A DNA stretch of 64,000 nt. Origin: Adineta vaga (lineage: Eukaryota; Animalia; Rotifera). Below, one piece after another: positions 25,380 through 41,530 of this stretch. Numbering within the stretch: the first letter of the stretch is position 1; every line of letters begins with the position of its first letter. The position numbers were made by a program, and so were the translations under genes. Under the pieces are notes generated by a model. It had not been told where the DNA came from and ran no database searches. It saw only the letters and a list, made by a program, of their open reading frames with translations. The DNA lies in the NCBI GenBank assembly GCA_021613535.1, contig CP075492.1, positions 14,384,001 to 14,448,000 on the forward strand, in the 5' to 3' direction.

Positions 25380-27047
25380 CTAATCGTGACAACGACAAAC
25401 AATATGACCTGCATCACAACAAGCGCGTGCATCTGTTCCCCCGATACGATAATCGACTTGTGTTCTTGGTGTTGAATATATATCTTTTAATTTCGTTTCC
25501 AAAGCTTCATCGATAGCATCGTATACGGCTGGTGAAACGATAATTGGCGTTGATTCAGCTAAATCGTGACTCAAATCAAAGATTAATGGTGGTTTATGAT
25601 CGATAATTAATCCACGTTGACCACCACAAGCTCCATCAAGAGCCGAATATGTTGTATAATAAGCTTTATATTGATTGAAACGAACAGCTGTAAGAGTACC
25701 ATTTTGATCGGGATGAAATAAATATTCATGGCCTTGATTAGAACCATCGAAGAGTACTGAGCTAAGATCAATTCCATCGAAACTACGATTTGATGGTAAT
25801 GTAAAACCAGTAAGATGAGCAATGGTTGGCAACATATCCAAATGTGATCCAATGGCACTGGAAACAGTACCTGGTTTGATCATACTTGGCCAATGTGCAA
25901 TAAATGGTACTCGATGCCCTGCTTCCCATGTAGTAAATTTTGCTGTACCACCTCCGCCACCTCCAAATGGTAACGATGAAGCTTGCCATATACCACCAAA
26001 TGGTCCTTGATTTCCTGCTAGATCACACTTGGAAGACCATGGTCCATTATCACTAGTAAAGATCAGCAATGTTTGATTTAAGATATTCAACTCTTTTAAT
26101 AGTTGATAGGTTTGATTAATATGATAATCCATTTCACGTAATGTATCACCGTAAATACTCGGTATAGTACTGATATTTTTAAATCGTTGGGAATAATCAT
26201 GTGGAACATGCATATGTGACAAAGGTAGATAAAGAAAGAATGGTTTCTTGACTTTTACACTTTGTTGAATAAATCGTCGATCATTATCAATATATGATTG
26301 TGTTAATGTCGAAAGATTTACCGGTTGTTCAATAATTTCCTTATTACAATCGTCATTCAAACATCGTGGTGTAAGACATTGATACAATGGTATACCGACT
26401 GTTAAATCAGCTTCGATGATCTTCTTTATATCATCAGAATGTTCATGTTTTTGTTCAAAATGAAGTGGTGGATCTCGAGGACATACTTTCACAGGTGGAT
26501 GATTTGCTCCTGGATTATCTGTGCAACCCATATCAATACTATATGGAATACCAATATATTCATCAAATCCCCTATATGACGGATGAAATGGAGGACGATG
26601 TCCAAGATGCCATTTACCATGAATAGCAGTTGTATAACCGACACTTTTCAAATACTCCGATAGAATCGTTTCATTTGTCGGTAATCCTCCGAGGGCAGTT
26701 GGTGCAAAATTTTGCCAAACACCAGTACGTTCTGGTAATCGTCCAGTTAGTAGAGTTGCTCGACTAACACTACAAACAGAAGCTCCACTATGATAATCTG
26801 GAAGACGAATACTTATGGATGCTAAATAATCAAGAAATGGTGTATCGCGTGTATTAGGCCAGTTTGCTCCCATATCACCCCAACTCATATCATCAGCCAT
26901 AATTAGGACAATATTGGGACGTGAACCGATTAAACGTCCCGATAAAGGAACAGTATGAAGAGTAAAACATGGCAATAAATATGTCAGTAACCACAATGAA
27001 GTAAAACATAAAAGTCGTGTTGTAAGAAAAAGAACTATCATTGTCAT
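25380..27047 (-). CDS. Arylsulfatase (ARSG/ARSA-like), secreted, intronless
   Basis: PNIVLIMADDM, CSVSRATLLTGR, GKWHLG, HVPH, SDNGPW, KFTTWEAGHRVP; N-terminal hydrophobic signal. Confidence 0.92.
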   Translation of the reverse strand: MTMIVLFLTTRLLCFTSLWLLTYLLPCFTLHTVPLSGRLIGSRPNIVLIMADDMSWGDMGANWPNTRDTPFLDYLASISIRLPDYHSGASVCSVSRATLLTGRLPERTGVWQNFAPTALGGLPTNETILSEYLKSVGYTTAIHGKWHLGHRPPFHPSYRGFDEYIGIPYSIDMGCTDNPGANHPPVKVCPRDPPLHFEQKHEHSDDIKKIIEADLTVGIPLYQCLTPRCLNDDCNKEIIEQPVNLSTLTQSYIDNDRRFIQQSVKVKKPFFLYLPLSHMHVPHDYSQRFKNISTIPSIYGDTLREMDYHINQTYQLLKELNILNQTLLIFTSDNGPWSSKCDLAGNQGPFGGIWQASSLPFGGGGGGTAKFTTWEAGHRVPFIAHWPSMIKPGTVSSAIGSHLDMLPTIAHLTGFTLPSNRSFDGIDLSSVLFDGSNQGHEYLFHPDQNGTLTAVRFNQYKAYYTTYSALDGACGGQRGLIIDHKPPLIFDLSHDLAESTPIIVSPAVYDAIDEALETKLKDIYSTPRTQVDYRIGGTDARACCDAGHIVCRCHD

Positions 27048-27681
27048 ATATTAGTTGAAGAATGTTATCAATCTCTACTTATTCAAACTAAATAAATAAA
27101 AGATTCTTTTTCTTTCACCAAGCACATGTTCTTTTTTCCATCATATGTAATGATTTCTCTGAACTCTAAACAATATAATAAATCATTATGTTATTATGTT
27201 GTTTCATGCTTCAGTTCAGAATTGTCGTGAAATCTAATTCTTTTTTTTTCTTTTTCTCATTTATATCACGTGGGAAGAATACGATACAAAAAGCAGTAAG
27301 AACTCATCGTGATAGAAGTGTTTTAGACGGTGATTTCGCTCAAATGTATACACTAAAAAATTTCTCTATTGCGATTCTATATCAAGATAATTACGTCCAA
27401 CATAATTATAAAAATACATACTTAACTAGTCGCTTCAATGCTCTGCAATATTAGTTTTTTCTATATTATACTATCAACGCAAATAAAATAAAAACTCGTG
27501 TAAAACTCAAGCACTTCTATCAGTATATAATTTCCTTGATATTAGCATATATAGATACATTATTTGAAAATCCTTGAAAAAATACTGCAACCATTTATAA
27601 CTGACGTTCATAAACAATTTTTGTAGTAAGTAACGACCAAGAATAAAACATCATCTAAATATTTCCCTTTTGATAAGAAAT

Positions 27682-30600
27682 ATGCGTGGACGAATTCATC
27701 AGTTATGGGAAAAGTCGAAACTATATTTACGAAATTTAAATTTATTTCCATCAGTTCCACCTTCAAATGATCGACATCAACTTCAAAATCAATTCATTTC
27801 AACACGATTATTTATTCTCTTATTCAGTCTATTATTACTCATCCTTCTCTCTTATACTTCTCTAGTCACTATTCGAAAAACTATCATCGTCAAAACACCA
27901 TCATTCACTGAATATGTACGATTGAATTCTACCTATTCTGAAACATTAACATGTGCATGCACTAAAATCTCGATTGACTACAAAGAGATTGTTCGTATTA
28001 ACTATACGTTACATCAAGTTTGTTCGAGTATTTTCATAACCAACAACTGGATGAATAGTTTCTATCCAAACAAGACGAACGGTTCGAATGATATACCAAT
28101 CTTAGATTTCCGAGTACTAGGTACATACTCATTTCAAGCTTTGAAAAGCTTCTGTGAACTCGCGAATCAAACAATCTCGGACAGTATAGATCAATTTTAT
28201 TTGAATCAGTACGTGAGCGCATTTGTAACAACATACGATCAATTTCAATTACAAGTTCAGCTTCTGGTTATTCAATTTCAATCTTCTATCATTCGCAATT
28301 TCTGGTCCTCATTGTCTATGATTCGGGAAACTACGCAAGGAAATGCTTTGTATTCAATCATTCAAATAGCATATAGATTATATTTAAATGAATATTCTAG
28401 GGGTTTATACATGACTTCGATCAAATACGTAAATTGTAGCTGTTCAGCTTCCAATAAATGTCTGGGAGACTCTAATATATACAGTTATCCAAGGCCTCAA
28501 ACACTGTTCACAGTTCCAAATTTTTATATCGGATGCTATGTGATAGAGGGATTGCTACAATCAACTCTTCAGTGCTTCTATGATCAGAACTGTATCAATA
28601 AACTTCAGTCTTACTTGTCAAACACTTCACCAGTTCCTGTCATAGCTCTTAACTCATCGTTACCAAGTAATTATCATACCAATTCAACAATTAACGAGCT
28701 TCTCAAACAGTTAATGATTGAACAATGGAATATCTTCATCATGTATGAGAATTACTATGGACAATGTAAGCCAGCTGAATGTAGTTATAGTTATAAGACA
28801 CAAAATGGTGCGCTTTATATCATTACAACAATGATTGGATTAGTTGGTGGTTTGGTAACAGCTTTGGAATTTGCTGTACCATGGTTGGTGAATATTATAC
28901 GAAGAAAAAAGAGAGAAAACAGGCCAGTTGAAGGTAAGAAAAAAGAGTAGTTTTAGTATCGATCATTAAAGTGTTTCCAATAATGATGATGTACGAAAAA
29001 ACAAATGAATCGATCTGCCACAAAATAACCTCAGCTTTGTAAATAGGTGGTTGAAATTTTCAGAGTGATGCATTTAAAAATAACTACTATAGTAATGGAT
29101 ATATATTTTACAGCTATACTCTAGAGTCATCAAATTATTTAAATATTTCAATTAGTAACGCTTCTTTATCCTTTGTAGTACTAAGTATTCATCAACGAAT
29201 AACACTGATACTCCAAACATTGAAACATTCCGTACGAAATTTAAATTTATTTCCATCAGTTCCACCTTCAAATGATCGACATCAACTTCAAAATCAATTC
29301 ATTTCAACACGATTATTTATTCTCTTATTCAGTCTATTATTACTCATCCTTCTCTCTTATACTTCTCTAGTCACTATTCAAAAAACTATCATCGTCAAAA
29401 CACCATCATTCACTGAATATGTACGGTTGAATTCTACCTATTCTAAAACATTAACATGTGCATGTACTAAAATCTCGATTGACTACAAAGAAATTGTTCA
29501 TATTAACTATACATTACATCAAGTTTGTTCGAGTGTTTTCATAACTAAAGATTGGATTAATTATATTGATTCTACCAATACAGAAATAAACTTGTATTAC
29601 TTGGATTTTCGTACAACAGCTGCATATATATTTCAAGTCCTAGAAGGTTTCTGTGAACTGCTAAATGAAACAATCTTCGACAGTCTGAATGAATTTTATT
29701 CTAATTCATATGTAAGCGCATCTATAACATCACTTAATGTATTTCCATCTCAAATTAACACATTGATCAGTCAATTTCAATCGGCAATGATTGATAAATT
29801 TTTATTATCGTTTCTCCTTATTCGGCAAACAACTCAAGGCAACACTTTACTGTCTGCATACATGACAAACTATTGGCCTGGCGTACCATGGGGAGCAACA
29901 TATGTCGGTTCGCGTGCCTTGGAATACGGTGAATGCTCTTGTGCTACATCAGCTACATGTGTCGTTCAATCATCGTTCTACAACTTGGCAGACACGTTAC
30001 CGATGTTCTCGTTGCCGGGTATTTATATAGGGTGTTATGTGATTGAAGCATTGCTTCAATCAACGCTTCAGTGCTTCTATGATCAGAACTGTACCGATAC
30101 AATTCAGTCTTATTTATCATTTACTTCACCAGTTCCAGTCATGGCTCTTAATTCATCTTTACCAAGTAATTATCATATCAATTCAACAATTAACGAGCTT
30201 CTCCAGCAGTTAATGATTGAACAATGGAATATCTTCATCATGTATGAGAACTACTATGAACAATGTAAGCCAGCTGAATGTAGTTATAATTATATGACAC
30301 GAAATGATGCGCTCTTTATCATTACAACATTGATCGGATTGGTGGGTGGCTTAGTTAAAGCTTTGCAGTTTGCTGTACCATGGTTGGTGAATATTATACG
30401 AAGAAAAAAGAGAGAAAACAGGCCGGCTGAAGGTAAGAATCCAAAGTATTCCTTGAGTAAATGGATCATTCTCAATTATATTAAATTGGGGATAGTCATG
30501 ATAGGCCCTTTTCCGATATTTAACAATAATTTTTTTATTCTTTTCAGCATTAAGCATTCTTGAACGAATGACACTATTATACCAAACATTGAAACATTCC

Positions 30601-31831
30601 GTACGAAATTTAAATTTATTTCCATCAGTTCCACCTTCAAATGATCGACATCAACTTCAAAATCAATTCATTTCAACACGATTATTTATTCTCTTATTCA
30701 GTCTATTATTACTCATCCTTCTCTCTTATACTTCTCTAGTCACTATTCAAAAAACAATCATCGTCAAAACACCATCATTCACTGAATATGTACGGTTGAA
30801 TTCTACCTATTCTAAAACATTAACATGTGCATGTACTAAAATCTCGATTGACTTACAAAGAGATTGTTCATATTAACTATACATTACATCAAGTTTGTTC
30901 GAGTGTTTTCATAACTAAAGATTGGATTGATTACATGTACAGCGGTAGTGAAGGTGGCTTATGGGCTGATGACTTTCGAATAGAATCTCCAAGTTTATTC
31001 CAGATATTAGGAGGATTCTGTGAATTAGTAAATCAAACATTATCTAGCCAATTTAATGTATTTTATTCAAGTGGATATATGAGTGCATTCGTAACACCAT
31101 ATGATTTATTTGAATCAGAAGCAAAAGCAGTCATTGATCAAGTCAAATCGTTCACAATTAGTAGATGGATGTTGTCGTTGTCTTTAACTCGACAAACTAC
31201 TCAGAGTAATTCTATTCTAGCAGGAATACTTAGTAACTATGATCTACAAGTAGTACCTGTTTCTGATGGTATTACATTTACAGTAACAGTTTACGGTAAC
31301 TGCAGTTGCGATTCTTCACCGCTATGTGCTGACCATTCTTATATTTATGACGAATTCACGCGTGACATATTATTTAAAATACCGGGTTTCTTCTATGGAT
31401 GTTATTTTGTTGAAGCATTGCTTCAATCAACGCTTCAGTGCTTCTATGATCAGAACTGTACCGATACAATTCAGTCTTATTTATCATTTACTTCACCGTT
31501 TCCTGTCATAACTCTTAATTCATCTTTACCAAGCAATTATCACGTCAATTCAACAATTAACGAGCTTCTCCAGCAGTTAATGATTGAACAATGGAATATC
31601 TTCATCATGTATGAGAACTACTATGAACAATGTAAACCTGCTGAGTGTAGTTATAGTTATGAGACACGAAATGATGCGCTCTTTATCATTACAACATTAA
31701 TTGGATTGGTGGGTGGTTTGGTAACAGCCCTGAAGTTAACTGTACCATTCGCAGTCAGATTGATTTCATATTGCATTCATAAATGGAGTATGAGAGTAGT
31801 TCCAGAGATGCTAAATTTACAACAAACATAA
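27682..31831 (+). CDS. Single gene with three concatenated 2-TM / Cys-rich ectodomain modules (~1260 aa); one +1 frameshift
   Basis: Phase-1 introns 28934-29178 and 30433-30547 (GTAAG...AG) join the modules in frame; extra T at 30853/4 relative to modules 1 and 2; each module is TM1 (RLFILLFSLLLLILLSY), ~330-aa ectodomain, TM2 (IITTLIGLVGGLV). Confidence 0.85.
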
Positions 31832-32099
31832 TTTATTTATAGACACATCTTTCTAGAATGAACATTGCGCGTATATATTGGTATGAAGACGGACGAAAAT
31901 ACAGAATCATTGACACTCTCATGGAAAATAGTTATGTCATGAGAGAACATAATGCTATCCAATCTTTTATTCTTAGTTTGTTGTATTAAAGATGTTAATA
32001 TATGTCTAACTGATACCAATTGATTTTAGATCTAAAAAGATCGCTATTAGGAACGAGTTGGTCCCGGAATTGTTTAAGTATTTACATTAGTTGTTCTGT

Positions 32100-33023
32100 T
32101 GTTCGTCGTTGGATGAATTTCATTTCTATTATTTATCCATCTGCGTGGTAATAAATCAGATATAAGACTTTTTAATTCATGAGAAAATCTTTGTGATGCC
32201 ATCTATATATAAATAGAACGATGCGGTAGGAAAAAAAGATAATTATTTTATTTCACCCATAGAACTGATGAATTGTTCGATAGCTGCTCGATCCGCTGAT
32301 TTATTTGTGACATAAATGGTTACAGCAATATGAAAATATGTAACCATCCATGGTGTTTGAGTTAACATGTGGACGACTATTTGAAATAGAAGCATTGCAA
32401 AAATTTGTTGATCACGTTTTCGATTCATGTTCTCCTCTTCATGCCGAACGTTTGAGTCGAAGATTTCGATGAATCAGTATGGCACAAATCATCATAATAG
32501 AAATGGCAAGAATACCTCCGGTTTGCATAGGTAATATCAACCAGATAATAGTATTTATTACAACCACAGGATAAGCAGTTCGAACTGATGTGAAATTTCT
32601 GATCCGATCATTTGCGGAGGTCGACATAAAACGATCGACACATGAAACAGTCAAATACCAACGATAGATCATAGTTACTATCTGTAGTATATAGAAACGA
32701 AATTTGCAGAAGGCAACATTTCTTGTAGTTGGATTCGGATGATTGAGTGAATATAAGAATGGCGCAATAGTGAGAGACAAATAGATTGCCATTAGTACTG
32801 ATGATGAGCTGAAATCTAAATAATAACAAAAATATCCATATGCTAAGCTCAATTCTATATATAAATTTACATATGGAAAACACGATATTGTACGAAATTG
32901 TCGCCGATTCAATACTATGATGTTAAAAAAGCAACCAATTATACCGAAAACCAAATAGGTTGAATAGACATAGCGAATAATATTTTGTTGAATAGCACAG
33001 AATGTGCTACCTAATGATGACAT
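32100..33023 (-). pseudogene. Orphan GPCR pseudogene
   Basis: FGIIGCFFN, FCKFRFY, CVDRF, RDQQIFAML; internal deletion after ILPMQ and frameshifts near 32440 and 32240; end approximate. Confidence 0.7.
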
Positions 33024-33716
33024 TGCAAGTATAGATATGAGGCCAGTTATAATGTATTTCTTCACAAAGATAAGAGATCTGAAATAAATAAAGATAACAT
33101 GCTCGTTAACAACTATAAAAAATAAGTAGGATGATATGATGTCAATTGGTTTGCTATAATTATCGGATTTTTGTTCAACAAAAAATAAAAGGGATAATTG
33201 AATGTAAATATGTATTTAGAGCAGATGAGAATCGATTCAAATTTTGCTTTCTTTTAGATTTTATTTAAGAGCATGACACAAATTGTTTCCTGAACATGAA
33301 CATTAGTTATGTCATGCATATCTCTTATAATTATTTAAACATGAATTCAAGGATACTCATTGGAGTATATGTAGATTGAAGAAGACATCCTCAATGATGA
33401 TGTTCTTCTAACATATAGGTTTTATTAATGATGGATAAGAATAGGAAAATATGAAATTGAAATAAAATCATGCTTTAAAACTCGGAGTTGTACTCAAGAA
33501 AAAGATTGCTAGATCAAAATATAATAATTAAATATATCAGTTTCTAGTAGTTCACATACTATGAATTTAACATTTAATGATCGAACGATGTTAATCTAGT
33601 TACATCTCTAAAACTTATGGTGTAATTAATAGTTAAAAACATGAGAGATATTCTGTATGAAAACGAACATTAAGACAATAAAGTGACGCCCTTTACATAA
33701 TTTACAATAGTTATTA

Positions 33717-39277: not shown

Positions 39278-40753
39278 TTAATCTCGAACAATATTCCTAG
39301 TTAACTGATAATACAATCTTTGTTCTGACTCTGTCTTTTCTTCGACTATAGCATTGGCTTTGACGAGATAATCGTATTCAAGCATTTCACTTTTTCTTGT
39401 ATCTAATTCATCTAATTGATTCATAAATATTTGCGTATGTTCTTCAATAATATCAGTGTAACGACTTTCTAAATAATTCACCCAAAATTCTTTATCAATG
39501 ACAAAATCAACTAAATAATCTTCTCCAAGTTCATATTTTTCCTCTTCAATTTGTACAACTGCCTTTCGAACATTGTCATTCGTTGTTTTCAATGCATTTA
39601 AATCGCGTACAAAACGTATTCTTTCATTATCTAATGGCATATCAAGAGTATTTGCTGGTGAACCATAGAAAAACAAAGTTGTTTCTAGTTCTTCGACAAT
39701 TTGATCATCTTCATTTGTTGTTAATTCATTAAAATTTTCTCTCGCATACAGCGTAGCAAGATTTTGTAAACGCGAAAAATTATACACTTGTTCGATTGCT
39801 TTGCGTACATCTTCATCAGATAATTCTAAAGCCATTATTCTTTCTTCAAGTTGAATGATTTCCATGAGAAATAACGAAAATAAAATACCATCGTAACATG
39901 TTCCAATAAACGTATTTGCTTCCACAAAACATCGTTGACGCAAACGTAAATTGTTTATCATGGATTCCATTAGCTTAACAATACGTTCTCTTAACATCTC
40001 GCTATAAGTTTCTATATTAGGTAGTTGAAGAAGTAGTTCGAAACGTGCTATCCATATTTCAAAACAACCTGAACCTCCTTCGTACTGTATTTTCTCTTCC
40101 CAATATTTGGCAAATTCGACGGAAAAACTACCAATTGCTGCAGGTGGAACTTGATCATCTATTTCAAGGGATTTAATGCAATGAATATTGTCTGGAAATT
40201 GAAGAATTCGATTATGAGACACGAGCACTGTTTCAATTCCTGGTAGATGTGCGAGTTCATTGGAAACTTTTCGAAGTTGATTACAAGTTACGTTGAGAAT
40301 TTTTAAGTTTTTGAAAGATTTTATACTGTCAGGTATTTCTTGGAGTACATTATTGGAGAGATCCAATAGTTTTAAAGAAGTTAATTGAGTCAAAAGGTGT
40401 GGCAATTCAGAAAAAGAATTGTTGGCAAGTGATAAGAATTGTATATGTTGCATTTTTCCGATCACATCTGGAAGTGTAGTTAGGCAAAGAAAAGATAAAT
40501 CTAGACTCTCAGATTGTTGCTCAAAACAATCTTTGATTCTTTCTTTTGCTGTGAAATCTTGCGCATCTTCTTCCGGATCTCGCCATGATTCTAATGATTC
40601 TAATAATTCTAGAACAGTCAGAGTCCGCTGTGATGATGAAAGTCTTAAAGATCGTATTTTTGGTGACAGTGTATTGCTGGCATTTGCACGAGTTCGCCGT
40701 ACAACTGTAGGATTTTGACGTTGAATTAATCTGACGGTGGTGCCACGAATCAT
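39278..40753 (-). CDS. IpaH/SspH-like LRR + NEL (novel E3 ligase) protein, intronless, HGT candidate
   Basis: LESW...AKERIKDC....SLDLSFLCLTTLPD (effector-type LRR cap), ~5 LRRs, then LRQRCF.EA...GTCYDG (CxD), FSRLQNLA, EELET.L, FWVNYL. Confidence 0.8.
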   Translation of the reverse strand: MIRGTTVRLIQRQNPTVVRRTRANASNTLSPKIRSLRLSSSQRTLTVLELLESLESWRDPEEDAQDFTAKERIKDCFEQQSESLDLSFLCLTTLPDVIGKMQHIQFLSLANNSFSELPHLLTQLTSLKLLDLSNNVLQEIPDSIKSFKNLKILNVTCNQLRKVSNELAHLPGIETVLVSHNRILQFPDNIHCIKSLEIDDQVPPAAIGSFSVEFAKYWEEKIQYEGGSGCFEIWIARFELLLQLPNIETYSEMLRERIVKLMESMINNLRLRQRCFVEANTFIGTCYDGILFSLFLMEIIQLEERIMALELSDEDVRKAIEQVYNFSRLQNLATLYARENFNELTTNEDDQIVEELETTLFFYGSPANTLDMPLDNERIRFVRDLNALKTTNDNVRKAVVQIEEEKYELGEDYLVDFVIDKEFWVNYLESRYTDIIEEHTQIFMNQLDELDTRKSEMLEYDYLVKANAIVEEKTESEQRLYYQLTRNIVRD

Positions 40754-41530
40754 GTGTAACTCTTGTATGTATAAATATAGCTTCAAAAATAGATGAGAAA
40801 TGATATATGGTATAGAATTTCAAAACTAAAATCTATTGAATGAGTCTTTTAGCCAATATAAAACATTATATAGAGTTACAGAAGTTGGATATTGCCGAAG
40901 GAAGTATTTATCGGCGAAGAATAAAATTTTCAAAGTCAGAGATGAATGCTGTCATCATCTTTATATTCGTAAGTGAGCAAGCAAAAAGATAAGCTTATCA
41001 CGACAAATAGAAGGAGAGAAAAGAAAAAGTAAAAATGCTGCTTGTTTTCTATTGCGATAAAAAGCACAAATAGTTAATCTTTGCACTTCGAAAGATCTAT
41101 TATCAATGTAATGCATTATTTCGAAATGTCATACGAGCATCATTTGAATTCTATTTCTATGATAGAATAACAATAGCAATACACGAAGGAATGCACCTTA
41201 TCGAACGTTAGACATGTTAAACGATCACTATCTATTAGAAAACGATTGTTATGATAGATTAAAAATAGAATTTTCTTTTTTCTTTTCTCTTTTTGATGTC
41301 AACAACATTTTTTCATGCAACAAATTCAATTATTGTGCAGTGAAGAAAACGTTTCGTTCATAATTGTAAAGTAGAAGTAGGATAGTTTAAGACAATGATC
41401 AGTTTGTATTTTTTTCTTCCAAATTTGCGAATAGAAACAGTTTATATTACTTTATATGAAAGTTCATTTAGTGATAAGTTAATTTTTCCTCAAGTTTAAG
41501 ATAAAAAATGTTTCTGTTATTTTATATACA

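Follow-up and report, generated by a model that had tools for sequence, protein, structure and literature searches.

Probable regional gene conversion around old, divergent cores in a tandem three-module membrane-protein array of the bdelloid rotifer Adineta vaga

The stretch of DNA analysed here, hereafter the window, comprises 64,000 nucleotides (nt) of the Adineta vaga genome (contig C3, 14384001-14448000). Three tandem modules of ~1.4 kb each (M1, M2 and M3) occupy window positions 27682-31831 on the plus strand. Each module encodes, in this order, a hydrophobic helix representing a first transmembrane segment (TM1), a Cys-rich ectodomain of ~310 residues in which N-glycosylation sites are abundant, a second hydrophobic segment (TM2) and a basic tail. 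Nearly identical 5' blocks (N blocks) and closely similar 3' blocks (C blocks) flank central cores that differ strongly from module to module. This arrangement is very probably the product of non-allelic gene conversion that homogenises the module flanks around old, divergent cores. An earlier note on this DNA had proposed that conversion homogenises the flanks while the cores diversify or are swapped between paralogs. The part that concerns the flanks is upheld by the contrast in synonymous divergence, by the clades found in the flank trees as compared with the core tree, and by incongruence between segments in two pairs of other arrays (see below).

A MAFFT alignment of the three modules was scored in windows of 50 columns. 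Throughout the 5' block (columns 88-402), 46-50 of the 50 positions were identical. Over 311 nt of this block, M1 and M2 differ at 8 nt, and M2 and M3 by two substitutions and one extra T, in agreement with the 8 and ~3 nt counted by eye in the earlier note. In the core, 17-35 of 50 positions were identical up to column ~900, and the overall identity is 50-53% at the nucleotide level and 36-39% at the amino acid (aa) level. In the 3' block the score returned to 36-50 of 50, with 85-90% nt identity over aa 274-390, so the two ends of the modules are indeed as alike as had been described. BLAST matched the 3' block of M2 to that of M1 at 90% over 391 nt and to that of M3 at 93% over 339 nt. Similarity between M1 and M2 reaches as far as the splice donor, whereas the last ~60 codons of M3 differ from both, M3 having a C-terminal tail of its own from about position 31741. 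The framework residues that had been said to be common to the cores (DFR, FCEL, TTQ.N, C.C....C and GCY) are invariant or nearly so in a 75-sequence alignment of the family.

Synonymous divergence (dS), calculated by the Nei-Gojobori method, is 0.017-0.057 in the 5' block, 0.27-0.47 in the 3' block and 1.8 to >4 (saturated) in the core. The flanks and the core are thus 30- to 100-fold apart, and dS is far from uniform along the module. A two-breakpoint maximum chi-square test gave values of 201-262 for the three module pairs, where the highest values among 100 permutations were 17-24, and placed the breakpoints at module residues 109-116 and 269-278. These positions agree with the coordinates and the abrupt 5' transition reported earlier. 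In the remainder of the genome (100.8 Mb, six contigs), the next best match was 75% identical for the 5' block and 72% for the 3' block. As the same blocks in other arrays reach these values at best, the flanks show no conservation at the nucleotide level. Within the window the amino acid identity of the N and C blocks is 94-97% and 80-88%, respectively, whereas between arrays it is 54% for the N block, 36% for the core and 49% for the C block. The heterogeneity of dS indicates that purifying selection alone is not a sufficient explanation of the pattern. It is concluded that conversion reached the 5' block and the 3' block separately and at different times.

Trees of separate segments are incongruent. 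The three window modules (WIN_1 to WIN_3) form a clade in the N-block tree (support 100*) and in the C-block tree (99*) but not in the core tree. In the maximum-likelihood tree of 62 cores, WIN_3 grouped with the third core of array L031, the nearest relative of the window array, at C1:1.48 Mb (97/80*), and WIN_2 with L031_1 and L039_3 (93/85); WIN_1 was basal to the group. The window cores share 56-59% of nucleotides with their positional counterparts in L031, as compared with 50-53% among themselves. In protein searches of the whole genome with each core, its sister cores in the window ranked from 17th to about 57th among the matches, at 36-40% identity; the M2 core was ~22nd in the M1-core search, and the M1 core ~43rd in the M2-core search. 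No core elsewhere in the genome was nearer than 41-49% aa identity to any window core, and hence no recent donor was found and the proposed swapping of cores between paralogs is not borne out. Nor do the window cores appear to be diversifying rapidly, as had been suggested: they look old rather than fast-evolving, and only aa 210-266 have a ratio of nonsynonymous to synonymous divergence (dN/dS) near 1. The window cores diverged about when the subfamily radiated, and probably before the window array split from L031.

The comparison was extended to 20 arrays fetched from the same genome, giving with the window array 21 arrays, 62 modules and 61 within-array pairs. Most family members listed in the genome search occur in groups of three, and 19 of the 20 fetched arrays have exactly three modules. 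The N blocks within an array are mostly 85-100% identical, and the core is often at background level; a module pair combining an N block of at least 85% with a core of at most 55% identity was present in 13 of the 21 arrays. The 5' breakpoint fell at module residues 106-117 in 15 of 21. Thus, the regional difference in divergence, the breakpoints, the incongruence of the trees and the recurrence of the pattern in other arrays together point to regional gene conversion.

In the 20 other arrays the flanks group by array, and in two pairs of arrays the cores group by position across arrays instead. The cores of L042 and L043 pair position by position with 64-71% nt identity and those of L035 and L046 with 65-72% (bootstrap 95-100), as compared with 50-60% for off-diagonal combinations. 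The N blocks, in contrast, are most alike within an array, reaching 98% nt identity for modules 2 and 3 of L043, 97% for modules 1 and 2 of L035, and 92% for modules 1 and 2 of L046. Cores that follow position and N blocks that follow the array show directly that conversion took place once the arrays had been duplicated. The partners of the C block may also differ from those of the N block: in L043, modules 1 and 2 share a C block (97%) and modules 2 and 3 an N block (98%), and segment partners differ in a similar way in L035 and L047.

Binned dS over the 61 within-array pairs was lowest at aa 51-85 (median 0.10), where 59% of pairs were below 0.15. It was highest at aa 210-266 (median 1.04), where none of the 61 pairs was below 0.15 and dN/dS was about 0.7-1.2. 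This patch is homogenised in no array examined. In L034, L037, L038, L049 and L050 most of the core has been converted too, leaving a patch at approximately aa 196-272 as the only diverged segment, sometimes accompanied by a second patch at aa 116-150. The array L045 (C4:9551900-9557900) shows a reversed pattern, in which modules 1 and 3 have dS of 0.00-0.07 at aa 86-160, while dS in the TM1 part is 1.1 and the C block is diverged. Conversion tracts can therefore also sit within the core.

Independent sequence data came from Logan contigs, assembled from the runs of three separate studies (2013, 2021 and 2022) and mapped to positions 27600-31900. The M1 core with both its junctions lies on one single-copy contig per run (28000-28587; 28024-28587 in run X4), as does the M2 core with both junctions (29529-30072), and the 5' junction and most of the core of M3 lie on a contig found in all three studies (30899-31317). 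These short-read contigs reproduced the junctions with 0-5 differences. The contig of the shared 5' block (259 nt, 29233-29491) had 2.7-2.8 times the single-copy depth (199.8/73, 300.5/108 and 76.8/28). Since the shared block has ~2.7x depth and the junctions are crossed, assembly collapse is unlikely; the earlier note had named a collapsed consensus, next to a uniform dS, as a finding that would refute its interpretation.

The extra T at positions 30853-30854 shifts the frame of M3 and leads to a stop at 30874-30876, and the remaining 334 codons are open in the +1 frame. As the rest of M3 is still open, the break looks recent. No indel was reported in the contigs of the three studies, which covered the bin 30768-30911, with the covering piece itself unlisted. 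The frameshift appears to be real, and conversion from M2 could erase the extra T or spread it. The third module of L042 (L042:4140-4160; C3:~15036440) carries another frameshift, in which 1 nt is deleted from the first Cys codon of the conserved T-C-P-C motif, ~7 codons upstream of the break in M3; the third module is thus broken in two of the 21 arrays. At the border between the core and the 3' block of M3 (31318-31408), all three DNA runs gave a second, alternative contig, which differs at 7 positions over 90 nt and has ~40-50% of the depth. It looks like a heterozygous haplotype and may mark the end of an allelic conversion tract; its alternative letters do not simply match M2.

Some of the observations weigh against the interpretation offered here, that is, conversion between the modules of what is probably one gene. 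None of the runs checked was found to contain the locus as RNA, run X15 having given one contig of 151 nt at depth 2.9, and the splicing is putative. The read evidence consists of contigs, none of which extends across all three modules, and one of the runs may be the source of the assembly itself. The converted blocks show no rise in the content of G and C at third codon positions (GC3), which is 0.149 in the N block, 0.179 in the core and 0.184 in the C block over the 62 modules; hence there is no sign of GC-biased conversion. Across 48 three-module representative proteins, the median identity of the N flank is 36% within a protein, close to the 33% between proteins. Flanks of distant members are as diverged as their cores, and homogenisation is therefore neither universal nor required by the architecture; it belongs to the younger subfamily that includes the window array. 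An approximately unbiased (AU) test left monophyly of the three window cores unrejected (p = 0.097), so that for the window array an old local triplication is not confidently separable from positional orthology with L031. Under either origin the window cores are far older than the flanks. No ortholog of any window core, by which conversion might be dated against speciation, was found among the 48 representative proteins.

Other explanations account for parts of these data. Equal age of the modules, with strong purifying selection keeping the TM-proximal parts constant while the cores were free to vary, has in its favour the dN/dS observed, about 0.2-0.3 in the flanks as compared with about 1 in the core patch, and the better amino acid conservation of the flanks across arrays. 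This explanation is refuted by dS, and it does not agree with blocks that are 67-75% identical in nucleotide sequence between arrays, which reveals no constraint at that level, or with the incongruent segment trees; it can hardly be credited. An assembly or polishing artefact, due to repeat collapse or to consensus bleeding among three copies, has in its favour that near-identical 311-nt repeats 1.4 kb apart are prone to mis-assignment of reads in polishing, and that the reads were seen as contigs shorter than the array. However, the contigs of three studies reproduce the junctions, the depth of the shared block is that expected of three real identical copies, the module-specific differences of 8 and 3 nt persist, and the same pattern is present in at least 13 other arrays and is seen again in a protein of Adineta ricciae from another assembly. 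Such an artefact is exceedingly improbable.

A recent triplication, after which hypermutation or strong positive selection drove the cores apart in a targeted way and at great speed, would be compatible with the result of the AU test and with dN/dS of about 1 at aa 210-266, and the patch exceeds the flanks in dS even in the young arrays or pairs L034, L037_1/3 and L049_2/3. Against it, the synonymous sites of the core are saturated, the window cores are slightly nearer to their counterparts in L031 than to each other, with WIN_3 and L031_3 grouped in the tree, and the cores of L042/L043 and L035/L046 predate the array duplications that their flanks postdate. The N and C blocks, moreover, differ in age, so that no single date of duplication fits, and recent triplication is considered unlikely. 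Exchange of cassettes, in which the constant flanks serve as recombination handles for the replacement of whole cores by those of paralogs, would give the same constant-variable-constant layout as in cassette systems, with sharp and recurrent breakpoints. Yet the best core elsewhere in the assembly is too distant to have been a donor (41-49% aa), and flanks of other arrays, at 67-75% identity, would make poor handles between arrays, which leaves cassette exchange very unlikely. Regional conversion of the flanks thus remains by far the most probable explanation.

According to the mechanism proposed, the module ends would have been overwritten repeatedly by non-allelic conversion between modules that lie 1.4 kb from one another. 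The 5' block, consisting of TM1 and the next ~58 residues, would have been converted very recently (dS 0.02-0.06), and the 3' block (~90 residues and TM2) earlier (dS 0.27-0.47). The tracts end at the cores, where homology is lost (residues ~109-116 and ~269-278), and leave the introns untouched. Homologous recombination is limited by mismatches, and rejection of mismatched heteroduplexes in cores that are only ~50% identical probably sets this limit to the tracts. Selection that keeps the three outer domains unlike one another, and the patch at aa 210-266 in particular, may contribute as well; dN/dS near 1 in the patch is equally compatible with a lack of constraint. Conversion templated by cDNA, which would explain why the tracts avoid introns, was considered and dropped, given the different ages of the C and N blocks and the retention of the introns.

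The closest described parallel is regional conversion among the variable exons of clustered protocadherin genes in fugu, zebrafish and human (PMC1852091, citing Noonan et al. 2004 and Wu 2005). There, paralogs share >99% identity in their 3' parts near the membrane, while EC1-EC3 are spared by conversion and hold the diversity (PMC1852091 and works cited there), and in the fish genes conversion has left a GC-biased signature in GC3 (PMC1852091). Both systems consist of tandem paralogous units for a transmembrane receptor-like protein, in which the membrane-adjacent part is >95-99% identical in nucleotide sequence, synonymous sites included, and differs strongly between subclusters or arrays, and the outer ectodomain, putatively the part that gives specificity, escapes conversion and carries the phylogenetic signal. 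They differ in that the rotifer units are three modules of probably one polypeptide rather than alternative first exons, in that each module is converted at both ends around a central core, and in that GC3 does not rise in the rotifer blocks. The rotifer family, moreover, matches no known fold, and the sensory or immune recognition role suggested for it in the earlier note is conjectural.

In cassette-type antigenic variation, as in msp2 of Anaplasma, vlsE of Borrelia and pilE/pilS of Neisseria, silent donors replace a variable core by conversion. A central variable region between conserved flanks is common to these systems and the rotifer array. In the latter, however, it is the flanks that undergo conversion, the cores being old and stable, and the genome search revealed no donor cassettes. 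The order of TM1, a large disulphide-rich ectodomain and TM2, and the presence of three modules per unit, recall the trimeric DEG/ENaC/ASIC and P2X channels. M1 and M2 gave no match to Pfam ASC or P2X_receptor, and Foldseek comparison with ASIC and FaNaC gave E values of 2-9 and a TM-score of about 0.1, which indicates no shared fold.

How the modules are joined was examined by reading donors and acceptors by hand and by a junction scan. M1 and M2 both end in GAAG/GTAAGA (the slash marks the putative exon end), and a pyrimidine-rich stretch ending in AG precedes both M2 and M3. Both putative junctions are in phase 1 and restore the frame; other in-frame acceptors are present, e.g. at 29124 for intron 1. 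The two putative introns gave no alignment to each other, in keeping with the statement in the earlier note that they do not look alike. No ATG lies in the open frame of M2 ahead of its N block. Thus, two phase-1 introns could join the three modules in frame. In the other arrays a continuous open reading frame (ORF) crosses 4 of 40 module junctions; of the remaining 36, 22 lack an ATG for the module that follows, and a GTAAG-type donor is present at most of them. The array L036 (C2:1012991-1016647) is intron-less, with a continuous open frame of 1,260 aa across all three modules, and the second and third modules are likewise continuous in L032 and L047. The presence of introns therefore varies within the family. 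Judged from these reading frames and splice motifs, the three modules most likely give one chain with six transmembrane segments, by splicing or, in some arrays, by read-through.

Named relatives of the encoded proteins come from bdelloid rotifers only (Adineta steineri, A. ricciae, A. vaga and Rotaria), each module having been searched separately and M3 as two pieces. Among 1.84 billion representative proteins, a profile search gave 3,918 clusters (50% identity) at E <= 0.001. Most of the top representatives are ~1,200-1,290 aa long with three matched stretches, and two are Adineta ricciae gene models. The modules of A. ricciae CAF1323976.1 follow the pattern of the window array, with N blocks of 93-95% and cores of 41-44% identity, and the nearest representatives (P0121, P0122 and P0124) likewise have constant flanks and a variable core. 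Regional conversion is a known process; the three-module gene family is large and previously uncharacterised, and literature searches found no description of it.

An AlphaFold2 (AF2) model of module 2, built with 75 homologues, has a mean predicted local distance difference test score (pLDDT) of 87.4 and shows the TM1-ectodomain-TM2 layout. Going by their adjacency in sequence to the TM helices of this model, the constant blocks would be membrane-proximal and the core distal. Pfam had no family at E <= 1 for M1 or M2, and for M3 only Ogr_Delta at E 0.9, which is noise. Foldseek found no match of the model in the PDB at E <= 0.001, a wide VIA search returned generic helical matches only (best Z 7.3), and all matches in the ESM Atlas were Rotifera clusters (TM 0.75-0.81). 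Y80K_N (PF27811), the N-terminal domain of a ciliate 80-kDa protein, came up as a language-model lead with a score of 0.77-0.78 and an atlas TM-score of 0.31, too weak a lead to use.

Table 1. Features of the three-module array, with positions in the window.
Feature	Position	Strand	Evidence or remark
Module 1, first exon, ATG at 27682	27682..28933	+	Ends at phase-1 donor AAG/GTAAGA; ORF and junction scan
M1 5' constant block (TM1 and next ~58 residues)	27727..28040	+	8 nt from M2; dS 0.05-0.06
M1 variable core	28041..28530	+	53%/50% nt and 39%/37% aa identity to M2/M3 cores; best elsewhere 45-46% aa
M1 3' block (GCYVIE.LLQSTL to TM2 and donor)	28531..28933	+	89-90% nt identity to M2; dS 0.34 vs M2
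Putative intron 1, GT...AG, phase 1, 245 nt	28934..29178	+	Read from sequence
Module 2, exon 2	29179..30432	+	ORF and junction scan
M2 5' constant block	29232..29545	+	Shared contig 29233-29491 at ~2.7x depth in three studies
M2 variable core	29546..30037	+	29559-30030 in the earlier note; single-copy contig 29529-30072 crosses both junctions (X1, X2, X4)
Hypervariable patch, module aa 210-266, beta-strands around C.C....C	29847..30017	+	Binned dS; predicted secondary structure
M2 3' block	30038..30432	+	Alignment, BLAST, dS
Putative intron 2, GT...AG, phase 1, 115 nt	30433..30547	+	Read from sequence; other in-frame candidates
Module 3, last exon, stop at 31829-31831, frame broken by 1-nt insertion	30548..31831	+	ORFs and alignment
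M3 5' constant block	30601..30915	+	2 substitutions and 1 inserted T vs M2
Extra T in M3 (gacTTacaaag; gacTacaaag in M1/M2)	30853..30854	+	Alignment and ORFs
M3 variable core	30929..31400	+	Contig 30899-31317 in three studies
M3 3' block	31401..31740	+	90% nt identity to M2

The locus adjoins an intact arylsulfatase gene (555 aa; 25380-27047, minus strand; Pfam Sulfatase, E 9e-58). The only close paralog of this gene, at C1:11988966-11989514, is degenerate and contains four stops. Synteny does not support L031 as a partner of the window array by whole-genome duplication, as the sulfatase paralog at C1:11.99 Mb does not lie beside that array at C1:1.48 Mb. Directly downstream of the modules is an ORF of 208 aa (32439-33065, minus strand) with several hydrophobic stretches and no Pfam match, which may be part of a gene for a multi-pass membrane protein. 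An ORF of 502 aa is located at 39278-40786 on the minus strand.

The array provides a clean, quantified case of regional concerted evolution inside a gene and further supports the view that the A. vaga genome is pervaded by short-tract ectopic conversion. It follows that the phylogeny and orthology of the three-module family need to be based on the cores and not on the TM-proximal blocks. The analysis also highlights a very large, wholly uncharacterised family of membrane proteins that are built of three modules, match no known fold and have so far been seen in bdelloid rotifers only, and in which the never-homogenised patch at aa 210-266 is the obvious place to seek specificity for a ligand or partner. 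A functional arrangement is put forward tentatively and must be regarded as doubtful: the proteins might be single-chain pseudo-trimers with a new fold, encoded by hundreds of genes, whose three membrane-embedded scaffolds are kept interchangeable by conversion and whose three outer domains, especially at aa 210-266, are kept different by selection, forming a combinatorial surface-recognition repertoire. If this were true, bdelloid rotifers would hold a previously unrecognised repertoire for recognition at the cell surface.

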